A DNA stretch of 64,000 bases, taken from the NCBI GenBank assembly GCA_964270895.1, contig OZ185448.1; one strand, written 5' to 3'. The stretch comes from Podarcis filfolensis (taxonomy: Eukaryota). Of this stretch, positions 7,399-61,077 are shown piece by piece. Numbering within the stretch: the first letter of the stretch is position 1; every line of letters begins with the position of its first letter. The notes beneath the pieces are model-generated. The model was not told the origin of the DNA. It saw only the letters and a program-made list of their open reading frames with translations, and did no database searches. Position numbers and translations under genes: made by a program.

Positions 7399-7538
7399 NN
7401 NNNNNNNNNNNNNNNNNNNNNNNNNNNNNNNNNNNNNNNNNNNNNNNNNNNNNNNNNNNNNNNNNNNNNNNNNNNNNNNNNNNNNNNNNNNNNNNNNNNN
7501 NNNNNNNNNNNNNNNNNNNNNNNNNNNNNNNNNNNNNN
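7399..7538. other. Assembly gap (140 N)
   Basis: N run. Confidence 0.99.
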
Positions 7539-32460: not shown

Positions 32461-32787
<327 letters not shown>

Positions 32788-36283: not shown

Positions 36284-37153
<870 letters not shown>

Positions 37154-39032
37154 TCAATCCAAATGCACTTTTTTGTGGGTCGGGGAGAAAAGATGGGTGA
37201 GGGATCAAAAGCTTGGGGGGGGGGACTGCAGAAGGCAAAAAGTAATGCCCCTTCCTTGGCCAAACGAACAGCCAGCGGGCAAAACACAATCACAAGCGGC
37301 TCTTCCGCCCCCTCCATTCAATCGCCAGACGTATCAAAACACAATTAAAATAAAATACTCGAATTATCTTCTCTCCACATCGCTATTTATTTTTTTTTGA
37401 AGGGAGAAACTGGCAGGCAAGGGCCCCCTCCCCATATTTTCCAAACGCCGCTTTCCCCGAAGAAGGAGAGTTGCTGCTGCTTCCTTTTTAAAACTACAAC
37501 ACAATCTATATCAAAGGAGGAGAGAGATCAGATTAGAACTGCAGCCACACACGTCCATAAAATAAAATAATATCAAACAGCACGGCCTATTGTTACATTT
37601 CCTCGCCATTCATTCAGAGGTGGGGGTGGGAGCGAAGCTTTGGAAAACCCCGGGATCGGCTGTTTTTATGGAAAGTGGGCCTCTCATTTGGTTCATAAAT
37701 TTACATGGTGACAAGAAGAGAGAAAATGAAAGACAGAAAGACCCACAAAAGCGCCGAGGGAGGGGGGTGGAGAAGGAAGACGAGAATGTGGACGAGAGAA
37801 TGTTTTTTATTTTATTTTGCAGGGGCTGGATCTGGCTCCAACGTGGCCCAAGGTGGAGATTGAGCGTTTCAGAGAGCGAAGGAGGGCAGCCTTTAACCCC
37901 CAAACATAAGCCAGACACCGGAGGTTGGGAGGAGGGGAGAGGAGGAGGAGGAGGCGAGCGCAACGCCATTAAGGAAGCTACAGGCTCGCCTTTCCTTGCC
38001 CTCTCGGAATCTTCCACCACCGAGCTCCATCTTGCTCACAGAAACCTCCCTGGTTTAAACTCTGTATTTATTTGTGTGTTTCCTTCCGGTGCTTAAGATC
38101 CCCGATCGCTCTCTCCCACTCCCCCGCCCCCCGACCCGCAACCCGGCTTGCTCTCCTCCACCCTCCCAACCCCCGGGAAAAAAGAACTGGAATAATACAT
38201 AAATGAAATCTTGATTATTATCAGGGGCATAGGCCAAACAGGACCCCGCGCGCGCGTGTTTTGAGAGCGCGAGGTTGAGCTTTCTCGCCCGGACTGGGGA
38301 GGAGAGAAAGCCCCGGGAATTCTTGGAAGAAGCCTCGCGGAATTTCTAACCGAAGGGAACCTCTCTGGCAATTGACTGACTGATTGATTGATTATTGGGA
38401 TTAGCAACGCGAGGAAGGGAGAGAAGTTACAGAGCTACGTCTGAGGTTATCTTGCACGTTGTTTGGGGAGTGGTGGTGCCTACGGATCGCTGCGGGCGGT
38501 GGAAGGGTGGCCAGGAGCAGAAAGATCCCAGCCAGCCTCTGACCCCCGCCGTTGGACAGAACCCACCCCCCTGGAGCCCATCGAATCCATTCTAAGGTAT
38601 AACGCACAGCATTTTCGTGGGGTAGCCATTGTGTTTGGGGCTGGTGGGTTGAGAGGAAAAATAAAATAAAAATGGAATCTAGCTTTTCTTGGAATCAACA
38701 AGCGGGCCAATGTTTGTCAGGGAAATGCATTCCACCCACCCCCAGCCTCTCACACTCCACACCACGTTTCCTTGTCCTGTTAAACTCACCTAACCCTGCT
38801 TTCCCAAGGACAGCACCACACGCCCCATTCCAGGCCATGGCAAAAGAAGAGGAAATGTACACAAGCTATGCAATCCCAGAAAGCAACCCATCTCTAAAAT
38901 CCACGGTCCTAGTCCTCCTCATCCCACGCTGGTCTCTGTTTACATGCGCACGCAAATCCAGAGACCTCCCGCCCTCTTTCCCCTCCCCACCGGGGTGGGT
39001 TGAGAAGTGGAAAACAAATGAAATTCCAATAC

Positions 39033-39462
39033 CTTCCCGTCTCATTCCAACCTTGAGGCATTTTTTGAGGCGACAATATTGGCACTGGTTGCGGTGATGT
39101 TGGTCAATGGGACAGTTCCGGTTGGCGCGGCACGTGTAGCTGAGGTTCCTGCGGACGCTGCGCTTGAAGAAACTCTTGCAGCCTTCACACGTGAATTGCC
39201 CGTAGTGCTTGCCGCTGGACTTGTCCCCGCACACCACGCACTCGATGTGCTGCTGCTGCTGCTGCTTCTCGCCCTGGCTCTGCTGGCTGCCTTGGTTGGT
39301 CTGCGCGGGCGTGCTGGGAGGGCCCCCTTGGCCCGGCGTCTGCGGGGTGTGCGGGGCGCCCGTCGGGGGTCCCGGCACAGGGGGCGCTTGCGAAGGCTGC
39401 GTTCCTTGCGGGCCGGCCACATCGTCCTGCGGGTCTCGCCACGTGCCAACTACCATTGCCAT
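39033..39462 (-). CDS. NR2F2: NR2F2/COUP-TFII coding exon 1 (A/B region plus C4 zinc-finger DNA-binding domain), 143 codons + 1 nt
   Basis: Translates [15 protein letters not shown]...[72 protein letters not shown] context GATATGG. Donor G|GTATTG at 39032-39031. [15 protein letters not shown] and the N-terminus match NR2F2 rather than NR2F1 or NR2F6 (recalled sequences). Confidence 0.98.
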
Positions 39463-40081
39463 ATCTATGGGACACCTTGGCCAAATTGCTCGCCCCCCGT
39501 AGCTTTCGGTTGCCAGCGGATCCGCTTCTTCCGAGGGCTGAGCCCGCAGCTCTTCAGCTAGGAAGCGTCCTTGCGAGAGAGACCTATTTATCTCTCTGTC
39601 TAGATATAGATAGATATAAATATATAATTTAGTCCACCTTTGTTTTTATTTGTTTTCTCTTTCTTTTGCTGTCCTCCCCAGTTCGCGTTGGCGAGTTTTT
39701 GTTCCCCCCTTCTTTTTTTCCCTTTTTTGTGGAAGTTGTTCGGCTTGTGTGCGGTTTCCCTTCTTTTTCTTCTTCTCTTCTACCCTCCTCTGGTCCTTTC
39801 TTTTTAAATTAATTTAATGTCCTTTTTTTTTTCTTTGCTTGCTTGCGCCCCACTTTTTCCTTGCTGGGCAGTCCCCCAAAATAAAGTCAGCAATGCGGGT
39901 CACCAAAGTGGGGTGGGGAGGGGAAGAAAAGTAGAGCAAGAACGAGGAAAGAGAGAGAGAGAGGAAGAAAGAAGAAAGGGGACGAGGAAGGGGGAAACAG
40001 AGCAAAGAGGTTGGAGGCGATTGTCTGGTAGCAAATGAATAAAGGAGAAAAGTACAACAAAAATACAAAAGAGGAAGAGAG

Positions 40082-40134
<53 letters not shown>

Positions 40135-41845
40135 TTCTCTTCAGAGGTGCCCCCCTCCCTCTCTCTCGGGGAGCCGAGCAGAGTTGCAGGAGGAGAGGCT
40201 GGTGTCTGGGGGCCAGATCCAGAGAAGCCCGCAGTCAGCCATTCAGGAAAGCCATCGAAAGCCAGAGAGGGGGGAAAGCTAGCAGCGGCGGCGGCGGCGG
40301 CAGCAGCAGCAGCAGCAACTCCGGCGCGCGGCCGCTGGAGGAGAAGAGGGAAAGGCGCCGCGGCAGAAGATCCCACGCTCGGCGCGGCGCTCCGGAGCCC
40401 CGTCCTTGCTGCGCCGCCGCCTCCTCCCGCTGCTGCCGCCGGTGGGAGTGCTGGGATCGGATGCCCCGCTCGGAGTTTGGCGAAGCTGTAGAAACATCAA
40501 CCAGGGAGGCAGGGAGGGAGAAGAGAGGAGGAGGACGGGAGGGAGGGAAGGAGGGAGGGGGGGAGGGAAAAGAAAAAGAAAAGAAAAAGCCCTGGCCAAA
40601 GAAAACAAACAAAAAAAGCACACACGGGACGCGCGCGCACACACGAGACACGCACACACGCGAAATAGGCTAAGGGAGCCTTTTGGGGGGTTCGGGTTCC
40701 CCCCTGGTTCCTCGGTGGTGCGTCCCTCTCTCTCTCGGCGTGCCTCGCTCTTCTTCTTTCGCCCAGCTCTTTCTTTCTTTCCTTCCTCGCTTCTTTCTTC
40801 CCCCGTTTCTTTCTTTCTTTCTTTCGTTCGTTCGTTCGTTCGTTCGTTCTTTTTTTTTTTTTTCCTCCCCTCCTCCTTTGCTGCCGAGGCTACTCCGGCT
40901 TGCTCGCTCGCTCGCTCGCAGCCGCCGCCTCCTGCTCCTGCTGCTGCTGCCGCCGCCGCTTGCCGCTGCCTTATGCTGCTCCCGTTTCTTTCGCAAGTGG
41001 GTCTCTTTAGCAAAGCTGCTTCCTCGCACAACACATGGGGCGATAAGGGGAGGAGGAGGAGGCGAGGGAAGGGAGAGAGAGAGGGAGGGAGGGAGGGAGG
41101 GGGTTAGGGAGGGAGGCGGCGGCACTGGAGGAGGTGGGTGGGTGGGTAGAGAGGGCTGGGGGGAGGGAGCGAGCGAGGAAGAGAGCGAGAGCGCGGTGGG
41201 GGGAGACGAGAGAAGAGTGAACTCTCCCCAAGCTCAGGAGCCCCCCGACCCACCCGCCCCCCTCAGCCAGGGAGAAGGATAAAAGGAGTGCAGGAGGGGG
41301 GGAGGAGGAGGCGGGGGCCCGAGTGGGTGTCGTTGGGTGGGTGGGGGAAAGCAAGGGGTGGAAATTAATAAGAATTAATAATAAATATCAGAAGCAAAGA
41401 GAGAGAGAGAGAGAGGAAGGAAAATGCACCAGATTCCACCCCCCCTTTCTTTTTGCACGCATGCAAAAGTGGAGATTTTGGAGCGGTCCTTTGGCGCTGG
41501 GGGTTGGAGGGGGGGAGAGAGGAAGAGAGCTCTCCTTGCAAGCAGAAGAGATGGGGGCAAGCGAGAGAGGGTTTTGCACGCGCACAAAAAGGTAAAGGGG
41601 GAGGGGGCAGCGAAAGGAAGAAAGAGAGAAGGCGAGAAGAGAGAGAGAAACGGGGGTAAGAAAAAGAAAGGGGAGGGGAGGGAGAAAAGAGAGAGAGAGA
41701 GGCAAGGGGAAAAAAAGAGAGAGACCGAGAATCCCAGTGATCAAATATGCTAAGGAGGGTGGGTGGGTAGGTGGAGTGGGGGGGGGGGTTAAAGGAGTGA
41801 ATGCGATTTATAGGAGCGGGGCTGGGGAGAGTGGCGAACGCTTTC
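39463..41845 (-). other. NR2F2: Predicted long 5' UTR of canonical NR2F2 (TSS inferred from TATA position)
   Basis: CpG-rich, microsatellite-rich sequence between the ATG and a TATA box at 41869-41876. TSS and lack of an intron are inferred, not observed. Confidence 0.55.
40085..40130. repeat. (GA)n microsatellite in predicted 5' UTR
   Basis: Direct reading. Confidence 0.95.
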
Positions 41846-41868
41846 TCCGCGATCAGCTCACCCAGCTC

Positions 41869-41876
41869 TCTATATA
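41869..41876 (-). promoter_or_regulatory. TATA box of main NR2F2 promoter (TATATAGA)
   Basis: Minus strand reads GTGTCAAAGTTCACTATATAGAGAGCTGGG. Confidence 0.65.
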
Positions 41877-41877
41877 G

Positions 41878-41890
41878 TGAACTTTGACAC
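41878..41890 (-). promoter_or_regulatory. DR1 nuclear-receptor element GTGTCA-A-AGTTCA (RAR/RXR, HNF4 or COUP-TF type)
   Basis: Plus strand TGAACTTTGACAC: two AGGTCA-like half-sites with 1-nt spacing. Resembles the DR1 described in the mammalian COUP-TFII proximal promoter (recalled). Confidence 0.75.
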
Positions 41891-41911
41891 GACGGCTGCA
41901 ACTTAGCACAC

Positions 41912-41925
41912 GTTGCCATGGCGAC
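41912..41925. promoter_or_regulatory. RFX X-box-like palindrome GTTGCCATGGCGAC
   Basis: One mismatch from the perfect X-box GTTGCCATGGCAAC. Confidence 0.6.
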
Positions 41926-43889
41926 CGCTCGCCTTATAAGGCAAGAGGCTGCCTTTGACTGGTCAAAAGCTCCCGGACCTCCCCTCGCCCCTCATTGGGC
42001 AGTTCAGCCTTGTGCACGGCTGGGATGGCTGGAGCCCCGGGAAGTCCGCCAGGTCCTAAAGGGAGCTCGGTTCTTTGCTTCTTCTTCTTCTGCTGCTGCT
42101 CCTTTCTATCTCGTCAACACCCCCCCGCGCGCCCTTTCCCTTTCCCCCCTTCTTCTCTCTTTCTCTCACTCCGTAACCCCCCCCCCCAATTTCTTTCACC
42201 CAGCTTTGAAACTCAGAGCAACAAAAGTAAGATTTGAAGGGGGAATTTTTCTTTTAAAAAGAAGAAGCATTATACATATTTTATTTATTATGGGAATGAG
42301 GGATCTAGCAATGATTTTTTTAAAAAAAGTCTTGATTTTGCGCGCACACACAGACACACACACACATATGCGAGAGGGTGGGTGGAGGTCGGGACACCGC
42401 TCCTTTTTAAAGGATGCTAGACAGGTCTTTGTGAGACGACGGACTTTCTGAACTCTTTTGCTGGGAGATCAACAGTACGGTCCATCCCCCTGTGAAAGGC
42501 TGAGGCTTGAGGAAGAGAGACAGCTCTATCCTCTTCCTGCCACTGTTGCTGAGCTTAGGTGGGGAAAAACAATTTCGTTCTTATAGGGAAGGGTCATTTC
42601 AGCTGAGCAGTGGCGTTAGGGGAGCTGTATGTGCCTGGGTTAAAGAAATTAGACAAATACAGCACTGTAGACAGCTTGGGTCGCAGCGGTGCTGACACAG
42701 ATTGACACAAACGCTGCCCATTTCGGATTAAAGTTCTACAGGTAGGTGGGTTGAACTTTTAATTGCTTGATGACACGCAAGTCAGAGAATTGTTTGTTTG
42801 TTTTTCTTAAAAAGAAACACCCCTTCTTTTAGAAAAAGAAAAAGGAAGGAAAGAGAATACACTCTAACCTTGGCACGATGGTCTTGTAGAGAGATCTATG
42901 GACACAAACGCTAACTTGCTCTCACTTTCTGACATGGATGTGCAGCGAGGGAGGCCGTTAAAACTGGATTTCGAGCATGCAGATAATTCCCATTTTTAGC
43001 TTAGGAAGTCTCAGCCTTCCTAACACTCTAGAGGAGGCTGGCCCGTTGGGGGAAAAGATGCAGATAAACTGATTTGCTGGCACTGCGTAGGAATCTTTTG
43101 AAAGCTGCTTGCTCGACACATACATTAGATAGACATCTATCAATGTATAGGGGCGCACACATCAGAGGCTAGGGTAACAGACCTCAGAATACTTAACCAC
43201 ACACTTCATTGTTCCCTGAAGCCTCTAGCATTCCAAGAACCCATTCCCTTTGCTCCAAAATCCAAACAGAAATGGGGAAAAATTAGCATACAAATACACA
43301 CATGCATACATACGCGCAGAACGCCTGGCCGCCTGTACATACTCCCAAATGGGGAGACGTCTAACCCAGATGCCTTCTCAGGAGGAAGGCGATGATAGCG
43401 AGAAAGGGGAAAAAATCAGAGAGGAAAAGGGAGGAAAAGGATGGAGTTAATCAAACCCAGAAAACACATTTACAGCCTTTTCGCATTGGATTGGAAAGAC
43501 CCAAAGTCCCCCCCCCTCTCACCACCCCTTAAGAAAGCATATTTCCTCTTTTATGTTAACAGGAAGGAAAGGGGGAGAATTTCAGAACAAAACAAAACAC
43601 CCAAGCATGGCGAAGTACATTTGAACCTCTGCAACTTGATTTAATTTTATAGCCTTAGACGAGGTTACATATTTAAGTCATCGCCTAGCTGTGGGATCTC
43701 TCGCGCTGCAATCTAGAGGCAAACTGACCTCCAGGCAGAGAAGTAAGTGTTCCAGCGAAATACATTTGCTGAGAAGGACAAGAGAAAAATGATAAATGGC
43801 AGGCTAGAAACAGACTCAAAACTGAGAGTATATATATTTATATAACTCATATATACCCCCACACGCACTTGCACACACAGACTTCTTGG

Positions 43890-43892
<3 letters not shown>

Positions 43893-43970
<78 letters not shown>
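43893..43970. repeat. Compound (GT)n(AT)n microsatellite
   Basis: Direct reading. Confidence 0.95.
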
Positions 43971-43974
<4 letters not shown>

Positions 43975-45959
43975 CACAAATACACACGAGGTATGTCCAA
44001 GACACATATTAAATGAGACAATGGGGATCCCAGATACAAATATCTGGATCTGGAGCTGTAACCCTTTCCATCAGCTCAACGCTATCACGTTGCCACGTTC
44101 GTACCACCCACCCCTTTCTGTTGAAGAAATAAATGTCTGTTGCTAAGCTTGCAGGTGCTACGGACGAAGGCAGGAAAGTTGTAACATGAACTCTGCTTGT
44201 TACTGGCCCTGGCAATATTGTCCGTTTCATACGGTCAGTTTCAAAGCGAGCGGTGGAATGTTCTATTGATTAGAAGGACTTGGCCGCCTGTAAACAGTGG
44301 AAGATGCCCTCTATGATCCAGAAGAGATGGAAATAATCGGCCTCTAGGATTGCAGAGAACTAGCGCCTTCATACACCCCCCTCCATATCTCTCTCTCTCT
44401 CGTGTGTGTGTGTGTGTTTCAGAGTATGGAAATATATATCCTGGATATATCCTGGATATATAGGTGATCACAGCCTATGTAAGGAAAATTCTCCCCATAT
44501 ATCACCACCATATCTTATTTTATCAGAAGAAATCTTATGATTCTGCTGAATGCAAAGACTACCAAAATAAAAATTAAAAAATCCGAAAGGGGAAATAACG
44601 ACCCTTCTGTATTAATCGTTTTCCTGCAGGATCGCAAAAAGAGAAAGCAACTAATCACCGAGAACTAAAATAGACGGAGCTCACTCAAGCCCTAACATCA
44701 AATGCTTTGATAGTGTACGTCTGTTCATCCAAAGGATGGAACTATTAAAAATAGCAGAGGTGGGGAGTTGGCAAGTTCATGGCTGACTGGCTGTTCATTC
44801 TCTCTTTCTCTCTCTCCCCCTCCCCACATTACACAGCAACATAGGATCGCTTAAAGAGAACGATTCTCAATTCATCATCCATAACTGTCAATTTACAGAG
44901 CTCAGTTATAATCCCAGACCTTATTTATTGCCTTGCAAGTAAGGATCCATTTTGCAACTTCTGGGGAGAAGCAATAGTGGTATTAATAATACCTATCCAC
45001 GTTCCCATTTTTTAAAACAGGTGTACATTCATCAGGAGATCCGGGATGTTAAATAGAAAAAAGTGTGGAATGTTTTATGGGAAACGTTAGGTTACGCGAG
45101 GTGGGGAAGCAGGAACCTCCCCTCTTTATTTTTTCCTGGCGAAAGGTGCGGGGATGGGGAGAGTTTGGTAAAACAACAACAACGACAACAAGAAACCCTC
45201 CCTTCAGTTCTTCCTGGCTTCTTTGCAACGAAGTTTGGACCCTCTGAAGTGAAATCAGTGGGGGGAAACCGCTGGGTTACGTGGGGGGAAGACTCAATGA
45301 ATGCTCACTGTGTTGTTTGCCTCCCCCCCCCGCGTCCCCTCCCAGCTCCATCCGAAGAGCTATGAATGGGGGAAAGTGGCCCTCCATTGTGCGACACTGA
45401 ACTTTCAAGTCAATGTAATTTTTAACCACTGGCTTGTGGTACTTTGAAAATCACCAGGGGCTGTCAGAGTCGGGCCCTCTGAAAAATTTACAGTGCTAAA
45501 TTAGAACATATGCTAGGAGAGCGAGAGATGGAGAGAGAAAGAGAGGACAGAAGTGTGTGTATTGGTGTGTGTGAGGCGGGGGGGGGGGGGGGAGGAGGAA
45601 GAGGACCGGCTGGAAGACTCCAGAAGTACAGTATGCGTCTGCCCCCTAGCGTAAGTCTTTCATCGGCCTGAAAAAAATCCAACTTTCAAAGAAACGCTGC
45701 TCTTAAAGGGAAAGGGACGTGGGGGGAGGACGTAGGCAAAGCGAGACGGGGGGGGGGGGAGGCAAGCAACTCCTAAACTTCTGTACGTTTATAATATGAT
45801 TAATTCCTCCGGATTGCCAGTTAAGGAGTTATGTCATTTTAAAAATAAAATAAAATAACATCTTTTTGTGCTCCGGACTTGCAAACTTCCGAAAAAATTG
45901 TGATTTTTTTTTTTTAAGGGAGGAGGCGACATAGGATGGATAAGGAATCCCCCGGCCGG

Positions 45960-46182
45960 TCTAATAGGGAGAAGCGAGTGTGAGCGAGTGCATGTGCGTG
46001 CGTGCGTATTTCTCGCGCTAGGGAAAGTCTAGAGCTCTTCCACGCGGCTTTTTTTTTTTAAGTGACATCAGCCTGAAGATTATTAATCCCCCCCACTCCC
46101 CAACTTCCAACAATTAAAAGGAACAAACAAAACTTTGCGCCTGGAAACCTGGATTTGGCAACAGATATCCCCTCTGGCAGTG
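45960..46182 (+). ncRNA. Candidate first exon of an antisense lncRNA (NR2F2-AS1-like position)
   Basis: CpG-rich unique block ending in a plus-strand donor CAGTG|GTGAGT (46183-46188), between the isoform-2 exon and the main promoter. Positional inference only. Confidence 0.3.
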
Positions 46183-46923
46183 GTGAGTACCTCTACTTTA
46201 TCATCCATCAGAGATTTTAAGGGGGTAAGGATAAAGCGGAGCTGCGGAACGGGGACTGCAAAGAAGGCTAGTCGTGAAACTCAATTTTGCTCCTGGAAGA
46301 AGTGGGGGGGGGGAGAGAAACCCAAGCAAAAACGCACGTGGCTACAAATTCTTGCAGTTTCATTTCCTATTCCTTGCCTTAGAGAGGTCCCTTTTCCTCC
46401 CCCCTTTTCAATCACTGCTTATACCCACAGCAATACGACCTTGAGATTTTAGACTGGTTCTGACTCAGAGAGGCATCATCATCATCGAATCCGAACCGGA
46501 TTTGGAAGGGGGGGTACCCTTTGGATAGCTGGAAAAGGGGCTTTATAGAGAAGCATATTTTTCACGACATACACCCACACACACATAGGGACCTTTCTCT
46601 CAATTAGTAGTTGATGTAAAGTCCACACACAGACATCGTTCCCCCCCCCCCACGCTCCCGGCACAAATCCCGCCCTCCCCACGTAACCTTTGAAAGCAGA
46701 GTTTTCGTCCCCGACCCTCAAACCATTGACTTCGGGGGTGCGGGGGAAGTTCTCTGAATTTCAACGCAGGGCATTACTTTTGCGCTTCGGATTTCAGCCT
46801 TTAAAATGAAATAAGTAAGGAATGAGAGAGGGGGAGAGAGACCCGCACGGCCACAAACCAGGTCGCAAGGAGAAGGGGAAAGAGAGAGAGAGAGAGAAAT
46901 TTAAAAAAGAGAATGAAACATAC

Positions 46924-46966
46924 CCAAAACATATTTGCCTTGTTCAAGATCCCAGATCGCTTGCAT
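46924..46966 (-). CDS. NR2F2: NR2F2 alternative first coding exon (isoform 2/B, DBD-less), MQAIWDLEQGKYVL + 1 nt
   Basis: Read by hand: AAG ATG CAA GCG ATC TGG GAT CTT GAA CAA GGC AAA TAT GTT TTG G|GTATGT. Phase 1 fits exon 2; in-frame TAA upstream. 43+528+275 = 846 nt = 281 aa. Resembles the human isoform-2 N-terminus MQAVWDLEQGKYGF (recalled). Confidence 0.9.
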
Positions 46967-47488
46967 CTTCTTCCTGTTGTTTGGCAGCTGATGGCTTTTA
47001 AATTATTATTTTTTTAGGAAAAAAATTGGGCAGGAGAAAACCCCCCCTTAGGCAATGAAAACGTATCGCCCTGGTATTTATCTTAGCGATTGTACAAACT
47101 GATTTTGGAAAGGAGAGCGAGGGGTGGTTACTATTGGGGGTGGGGGTGGGGGAGAACCTGAAGGGATCAGCGAACGAAAAAGAAAAAAAGAAAAAGAGCG
47201 ACGAAAGGATAAGATCTTTCTCAATCTATAAAGGAATGTGTTTTGCCCCCCTGTGTATTTTGAGCGTGGAGCCTTGGAACAGGCGGCAGGGAGGAGAAAT
47301 GACAATAATAATAATATCCTATATATGCACACTCTTAAGTTTAAACAGAGCGGGTCCGAGGGGGAGTTTGCTTCACAGCGGTTGAAGAATGCGCGCCTCG
47401 CCTTTAAGAAAAAAAAGGGGGGGAGGAAAGAGCCCCCACCCAAACGTTAAGGTAGCAGATATCTATCTTCTCATTCCTTAGAAGGAAG

Positions 47489-47630
47489 NNNNNNNNNNNN
47501 NNNNNNNNNNNNNNNNNNNNNNNNNNNNNNNNNNNNNNNNNNNNNNNNNNNNNNNNNNNNNNNNNNNNNNNNNNNNNNNNNNNNNNNNNNNNNNNNNNNN
47601 NNNNNNNNNNNNNNNNNNNNNNNNNNNNNN
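47489..47630. other. Assembly gap (142 N)
   Basis: N run. Confidence 0.99.
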
Positions 47631-57803: not shown

Positions 57804-57939
57804 NNNNNNNNNNNNNNNNNNNNNNNNNNNNNNNNNNNNNNNNNNNNNNNNNNNNNNNNNNNNNNNNNNNNNNNNNNNNNNNNNNNNNNNNNNNNNNNNN
57901 NNNNNNNNNNNNNNNNNNNNNNNNNNNNNNNNNNNNNNN
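57804..57939. other. Assembly gap (136 N)
   Basis: N run. Confidence 0.99.
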
Positions 57940-60946: not shown

Positions 60947-61077
60947 NNNNNNNNNNNNNNNNNNNNNNNNNNNNNNNNNNNNNNNNNNNNNNNNNNNNNN
61001 NNNNNNNNNNNNNNNNNNNNNNNNNNNNNNNNNNNNNNNNNNNNNNNNNNNNNNNNNNNNNNNNNNNNNNNNNNNNN
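60947..61077. other. Assembly gap (131 N)
   Basis: N run. Confidence 0.99.

Follow-up and report, generated by a model that had tools for sequence, protein, structure and literature searches.

The segment at 46924–46966 on the minus strand of the window (the whole 64 000-nt stretch of Podarcis filfolensis DNA analysed here) is, as we conclude with high confidence, the coding part of an alternative first exon of NR2F2, and it defines the known isoform that lacks the DNA-binding domain (DBD) and is called variant 2, isoform b, COUP-TFII_V2 or NR2F2-Iso2. The exon in the lizard is thus an already known and already annotated conserved feature. Below we describe the locus and the product, the place of the exon in earlier annotation, its conservation and the evidence for its transcription and splicing, and we weigh these against the alternatives.

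RESULTS

The NR2F2 locus and the 281-aa product

The minus strand of the window is the NR2F2 (COUP-TFII) locus, and the features needed here are the following, in window coordinates.

46924..46966, minus strand: alternative first exon, coding part (ATG, 13 codons and the first base of a split Ala codon); known from sequence and translation, from a product equal to RefSeq isoform X3 of lacertids and from the third-position wobble pattern
46918..46923, minus strand: 5′ splice donor GTATGT of the alternative exon; GT in 13 of 13 loci with the exon, and a transcript contig breaks exactly at 46924
46967..47488, minus strand: 5′ leader of the alternative transcript, extending to the masked N run or past it; matched by contigs from run X1 (collinear over 46924–47488) and run X5 (47020–47246)
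36904..46917, minus strand: intron spliced out in the short-isoform transcript, containing canonical exon 1 and its CpG-rich promoter; bridged by the X1 contig between 46924 and 36903, with a word depth of zero at 46500–46895
39033..39462, minus strand: canonical exon 1, coding part (N-terminal region and C4 zinc-finger DBD), absent from the short isoform; ORF with a donor at 39033, and PF00105 only in the full-length model P0231
36376..36903, minus strand: NR2F2 exon 2 (hinge and most of the ligand-binding domain), common to all isoforms; 100% identity to NR2F2 proteins of many tetrapods
32461..32735, minus strand: NR2F2 exon 3, coding part (end of the ligand-binding domain, AF-2, stop TAA); from splice reconstruction

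The alternative ATG is located at 46966–46964, with A at −3 (aagaagATGc) and C at +4, and two in-frame stops are present 13–14 codons 5′ of it. From 46966 to 46924 the exon reads ATG CAA GCG ATC TGG GAT CTT GAA CAA GGC AAA TAT GTT TTG G and is followed by GTATGT; its 14 codons, which extend down to 46925, translate to MQAIWDLEQGKYVL, the extra G is at 46924 and the donor starts from 46923. The canonical ATG (39462) is on the same strand, and the alternative exon is 7.5 kb upstream of it. Canonical exon 1, from this ATG to the donor at 39033, leads to the full-length product of 410 aa. Exon 2 has its acceptor (...actgcag) before 36903 and its donor at 36376 (G/GTAAGC).

Joining 46924 to 36903 in phase 1 gives GCC (G plus CC, Ala), after which the frame goes on as VQRGR, and the alternative exon, exon 2 and exon 3 (32735–32461) together encode exactly 281 aa. 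Pfam found PF00104 alone in this product (residues 66–253, 138.6 bits against a gathering cut-off of 23.5), compared with PF00105 plus PF00104 in the full-length lacertid NR2F2 model, and the structure of the COUP-TFII ligand-binding domain (LBD; PDB 3cjw) spans residues 40–281 of the short product. In the 281-aa product the LBD is complete and the zinc finger (zf-C4) is absent. The ATG with A at −3, the upstream stop, the donor, the phase, an exon 2 at ~10 kb and a length of 281 aa had all been read from the sequence in the initial annotation, and every one of them was found where it had been placed. It had also remarked that the exon is too short for the ORF list, which is correct for 14 codons and a list minimum of 20 aa.

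A second acceptor is present 21 nt 5′ of exon 2 (36904–36924, minus strand; tgtag followed by TTTCTTCCTTATTTACTGCAG) and would add VSSLFTA. Because of this addition, the lacertid ‘isoform X1’ has 417 aa compared with 410 aa for the product of the proximal acceptor; the contig of the short isoform uses the proximal acceptor of exon 2 and not the site at 36904–36924. Just past the donor of the alternative exon there is a (CT)n microsatellite (46865–46912), whose length is strongly variable among lacertid assemblies and which was skipped as a repeat in the read comparison. Four runs of N with 131–142 bases are present in the window (7399–7538, 47489–47630, 57804–57939 and 60947–61077), and one of them, at 47489–47630, interrupts the leader or the promoter region of the alternative transcript, whose 5′ end lies in this run or farther upstream. 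Compared with four lacertid assemblies, none of which is that of the window, the intron of the window showed ~99% identity to GCA_027172205.1, 94–98% to GCA_964188315.1 and 91–95% to the other two.

The exon in earlier annotation

Searching proteins with the translation of exon 2 brought up a cluster of short NR2F2 products, one of which, the 281-aa protein P0124, is identical over all 281 residues to the product spliced from the window. P0124 is the NCBI ‘COUP transcription factor 2 isoform X3’ of Lacerta agilis (XP_033023383.1) and Podarcis muralis (XP_028562888.1), and two further XP accessions belong to it. We also fetched 15 NR2F2 loci of other vertebrates, which were reached via the full-length proteins and whose records hold the longest product of each gene only. 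In 11–12 of these 15 loci (the exon is present in 13), the alternative ATG is the exact start of the recorded gene range; the record of the frog Pelobates is the exception, with the exon present 5.3 kb upstream of the annotated gene start. Because the product is identical to the X3 models of both lizards and most gene ranges open at the alternative ATG, the initial description of a hidden exon that was likely missed by automated annotation is wrong. Its assignment was right: the first coding exon of human variant 2 (isoform b) has its orthologue in this segment, with a matching head, phase, length and domain content.

Conservation of the exon across vertebrates

The exon was intact in 13 of the 15 fetched loci, which include lacertids, a snake, Anolis, a bird, marsupials, a bat, a frog and paddlefish, and gene models with the exon are additionally present in turtles, a caecilian and reedfish. 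All 13 loci with the exon keep the ATG, the preceding AAG, the frame and the G/GT donor, and the frame disruptions in other reptiles that the initial annotation had named as a refutation did not occur among them. The exon was not found in an older garter-snake assembly (L007), which has gaps at that place, and it was not found within 10 kb upstream of the second paddlefish NR2F2 copy (L015). The other paddlefish copy (L014) has it, and its presence in one of two copies may result from differential retention after genome duplication. The heads encoded by the exon are the following.

Lacertids: MQAIWDLEQGKYVL
Tegu and Anolis: ..YAL
Snake: MQAIWDLEQSKYTL
Turtles, birds, bats and shrew: MQAIWDLEQGKYGF
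Primates, dog and marsupials: MQAVWDLEQGKYGF
Xenopus, Leptobrachium and Pelobates: MQAIWDAEQGKYVF
Ascaphus: MQAMWDAQQGKYVF
Caecilian: MQAFWDAEQGKYVF
Reedfish: MQSAVEAEQRKYAF
Paddlefish: MQPFWETEQRKYLC

These heads have the consensus MQ-x-x-W-(D/E)-x-(E/Q)-Q-(G/R)-K-Y, and residues 13 and 14 vary freely (V/G/A/T and L/F/C). Because the exon is present in frogs, caecilian, reedfish and paddlefish, it is older than the mammal–reptile split, and the element that had been called ‘ancient, selected’ reaches deeper than was claimed. Models of shark and skate carry ...QIISD(S/T)EQRQLQAMMFA before VQRGR, and in a flatfish model the last residues are ...AAYAFA; these ends may be diverged versions of the same exon, although a whale-shark model has Thr at the position where Met would be.

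Substitutions were compared among seven distant taxa (Podarcis, snake, Anolis, bird, marsupial, bat and frog). Variable sites were 15 of 42, with 4, 2 and 9 at codon positions 1, 2 and 3, respectively (hypergeometric P = 0.007). The Nei–Gojobori method gave a dN of 0.06 and a dS of 0.61 between Podarcis and bat, or 0 and 0.92 when codons 1–12 were taken. The dN/dS comparison that had been proposed for the exon came out in the expected direction, with dN far below dS in most pairs, bearing in mind that estimates from 14 codons are noisy and that several pairs are saturated or have a dS of 0. Peptide-level conservation across the mammal–reptile split, as initially claimed, is thus upheld, with synonymous third-position changes dominating. 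In the exon 28 of 43 columns were invariant, compared with 22 of 215 for the 150 nt before it and 4 of 202 for the remainder of the intron sample; of the 8 positions just past the donor, 6 were the same from frog to mammals. The substitution pattern is that of a translated exon and not of a non-coding conserved element, and conservation of this coding type, as judged from the compared sequences, dates from the last ancestor that ray-finned fishes and tetrapods shared.

Conserved non-coding elements are also present near the exon. A 26-nt block at 47073–47098 (minus strand; TTTGYACAATCGCTWAGATAAAYACC), 107–132 nt 5′ of the ATG, hardly varies between frog and mammals and includes a GATA-like AGATAA; a pyrimidine tract and CAG stand before the block in most species, and the X1 contig reads straight through it. 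The block may be an element of the promoter or the leader, or it may serve as an alternative acceptor. Moreover, an E-box at 46985–46990 (minus strand), ~20 nt 5′ of the ATG, is CAGCTG in lacertids and CACCTG in bird, mammals and frog, and is then followed by a conserved CCAAA.

A transcript from the upstream promoter could be real and its 14 codons nevertheless not be selected as protein, if they belonged to a regulatory DNA or RNA element (a promoter-proximal element, a splicing enhancer or a leader structure) and the protein started at MPPTQP in exon 2 or the head were irrelevant. The block at 47073–47098 and the E-box at 46985–46990 do adjoin the exon, but conservation stops sharply at the donor, and within the exon the third-position excess (9 of 15 variable sites, P = 0.007) and a dN far below dS are at odds with a purely nucleotide-level constraint. 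Many databases also have models that start at MPPTQP, whereas ATG, frame and donor are kept in 13 of 13 loci with the exon, from paddlefish to mammals. Finally, because of the C at +4 the Kozak context is good and not perfect, yet the leader has a single 3-codon uORF, so scanning ribosomes should meet the AUG at 46966 first. Taken together, we consider a non-protein origin of the conservation very unlikely.

If the segment is taken as a translated exon, purifying selection on residues 2–12 argues for a function of the head itself, perhaps as a signal for interaction or stability; with an invariant Met-Gln start, the head would be a substrate for NatB-type acetylation. The stronger proposal, that the 14-residue head has been under purifying selection since before the split of ray-finned fishes and tetrapods and therefore has a function of its own, distinct from that of the other DBD-less NR2F2 products, we put at even chances. 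In the literature that we searched, such deep conservation of the head was not described.

Transcription and splicing of the alternative exon

In runs labelled RNA (a guessed kind) from a closely related organism, up to 65% of the sampled words of 46850–47488 were present. Over 46500–47488, run X1 of a close relative, labelled ‘RNA?’ (again guessed), gave one contig of 687 nt with a word depth of 7, which is collinear with 46924–47488 with 7 substitutions and 13 gap letters (~98% alike). This contig extends ~80 nt past 47488, and the transcribed leader accordingly covers at least 600 nt 5′ of the alternative ATG. At the other end, the match ends exactly at 46924, and the remaining overhang of 29 nt (AGTAGGTGGCATTCTGCCCCTCTGGACGG, plus strand) has a single occurrence in the window, at 36875–36903, which is the first 29 bases of exon 2. 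The junction 46924/36903 was thus read from the loose end of one assembled contig, from a relative ~98% alike, and the intron at 46500–46895 had zero coverage in X1. Junction reads from 46924 to 36903 had been suggested as a check in the initial annotation, and this contig of a closely related lizard joins the two positions directly. In a second study, run X5 gave a contig on 47020–47246 only, and no reads on the stretch were obtained from the raw-read RNA runs X18 and X19, with 12% of each sampled.

The visible leader of 522 nt contains one upstream ATG only (47474, MRR-stop), and 46966 is therefore the first substantial start codon. Compared with 3.6 ATGs expected, a count of 1 (P = 0.08) is only suggestive of a leader depleted of ATG.

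The kind of the run was guessed, and the junction comes from one contig with an overhang of just 29 nt, which could also be expected if the contig derived from DNA (a processed retrocopy or an assembly chimera) and not from spliced mRNA; expression in the lizard would then be unproven. However, the break is exactly at the GT donor and the overhang starts from the exact AG acceptor of exon 2, and an overhang of this length would fit a de Bruijn contig ending at the shared exon 2, assuming a word length of ~31. Words of the leader, moreover, were found in four runs of the same sample and in further runs of other studies, and RefSeq models with the same junction are present in related lizards. 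RefSeq models are normally built with RNA support. An origin of the contig from DNA is therefore, in our view, scarcely credible. A chance short ORF beside a chance GT, for which nothing but the small size of the exon speaks, is refuted by the identity to annotated orthologues, the conservation across vertebrates and the junction contig.

DISCUSSION

Proposed mechanism

In human, the orthologous transcript NM_001145155 has its own transcription start site and is without the DBD, and the short isoform binds full-length NR2F2 and moves its activity up or down depending on the cell (PMC10073109, PMC7016888, PMC8997336). The review PMC7016888, which cites Yamazaki 2013 and Rosa and Brivanlou 2011 on the function of the isoform, gives the orthologous variant for mouse and human; isoforms are not mentioned in a paper on Nr2f evolution (PMC8608329). 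Our literature search on the short isoform returned no paper on a non-mammalian species, and a text search of the literature for the head peptide returned no paper.

In the lizard, as the X1 contig of the close relative shows, the transcript starts at least 600 nt 5′ of the alternative ATG, ~7.5 kb upstream of the canonical start codon, and skips the canonical zinc-finger exon 1 by a phase-1 splice of 46924 to 36903. If ribosomes begin at its first substantial AUG, the protein has 281 aa, consisting of the 14-residue head, the hinge and the complete ligand-binding and dimerisation domain. By analogy with the mammalian work, this short protein would be unable to bind DNA by itself and would pair through its LBD with full-length NR2F2, and probably with other partners or cofactors; we infer on the same grounds that the lizard protein dimerises with its full-length receptor. 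Such pairing would raise or lower the activity of the partner depending on the cell.

Significance

The gain for knowledge of the isoform is small, in that it has already been studied in human and mouse and the lizard exon is already contained in the RefSeq models of sister species. Work on human cells shows effects of the isoform on stem-cell differentiation, on melanoma metastasis and on pancreatic cancer. What is gained, modestly, concerns evolution: the head and its splice have been kept from paddlefish to mammals with a substitution pattern of the coding type, which argues that the DBD-less form is an old and selected part of NR2F2 biology and not a by-product of mammals or tumours. With conservation of this depth, the short head deserves a functional test.

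Comparison with known systems

The closest known system is NR2F2 variant 2 of human and mouse (NM_001145155, 281 aa). As in the lizard, its alternative first exon precedes canonical exon 1, the head of 14 residues, MQA(V/I)WDLEQGKY.., is joined in the same phase to AVQRGRMPP, and the product has the full LBD without the zinc-finger domain and is of the same length (PMC10073109, PMC7016888). The lizard head and that of primates and dog (MQAVWDLEQGKYGF) agree at all but three of the 14 residues, where the lizard has I4, V13 and L14 and the others have V, G and F. Regulation of variant 2 by promoter methylation, its partners and its effects are known from mammals only. The RefSeq entries for isoform X3 in Podarcis muralis and Lacerta agilis are the same protein as the product of the window, with a gene range that opens at the same ATG; these entries are computed models in sister species.

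Other DBD-less NR2F2 products exist, namely the type of human isoform c, which starts at MPPTQP in exon 2, and those from lineage-specific first exons. They share the same LBD and likewise have no DBD, but the conserved 14-residue head of the lizard short isoform is absent from them, and the lineage-specific first exons, such as those encoding the heads of rodents, pangolin and rabbit, are not conserved between lineages. In the paralogue NR2F1, DBD-less models of owl (P0187), crocodile (P0190) and dog (P0204) end in ...MFGYS before VQRGRMP, and NR2F1 may have a short alternative first exon of its own at the same phase-1 site.

A more distant likeness is to NR0B1 (DAX1) and NR0B2 (SHP), which have no classical DBD and act by binding other nuclear receptors and not DNA. 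The short NR2F2 would, by analogy, also be an LBD protein that acts via other receptors. NR0B1 and NR0B2, however, are separate genes with N-terminal repeats of their own, whereas the short NR2F2 is an isoform of a DNA-binding receptor, probably made from an alternative promoter.
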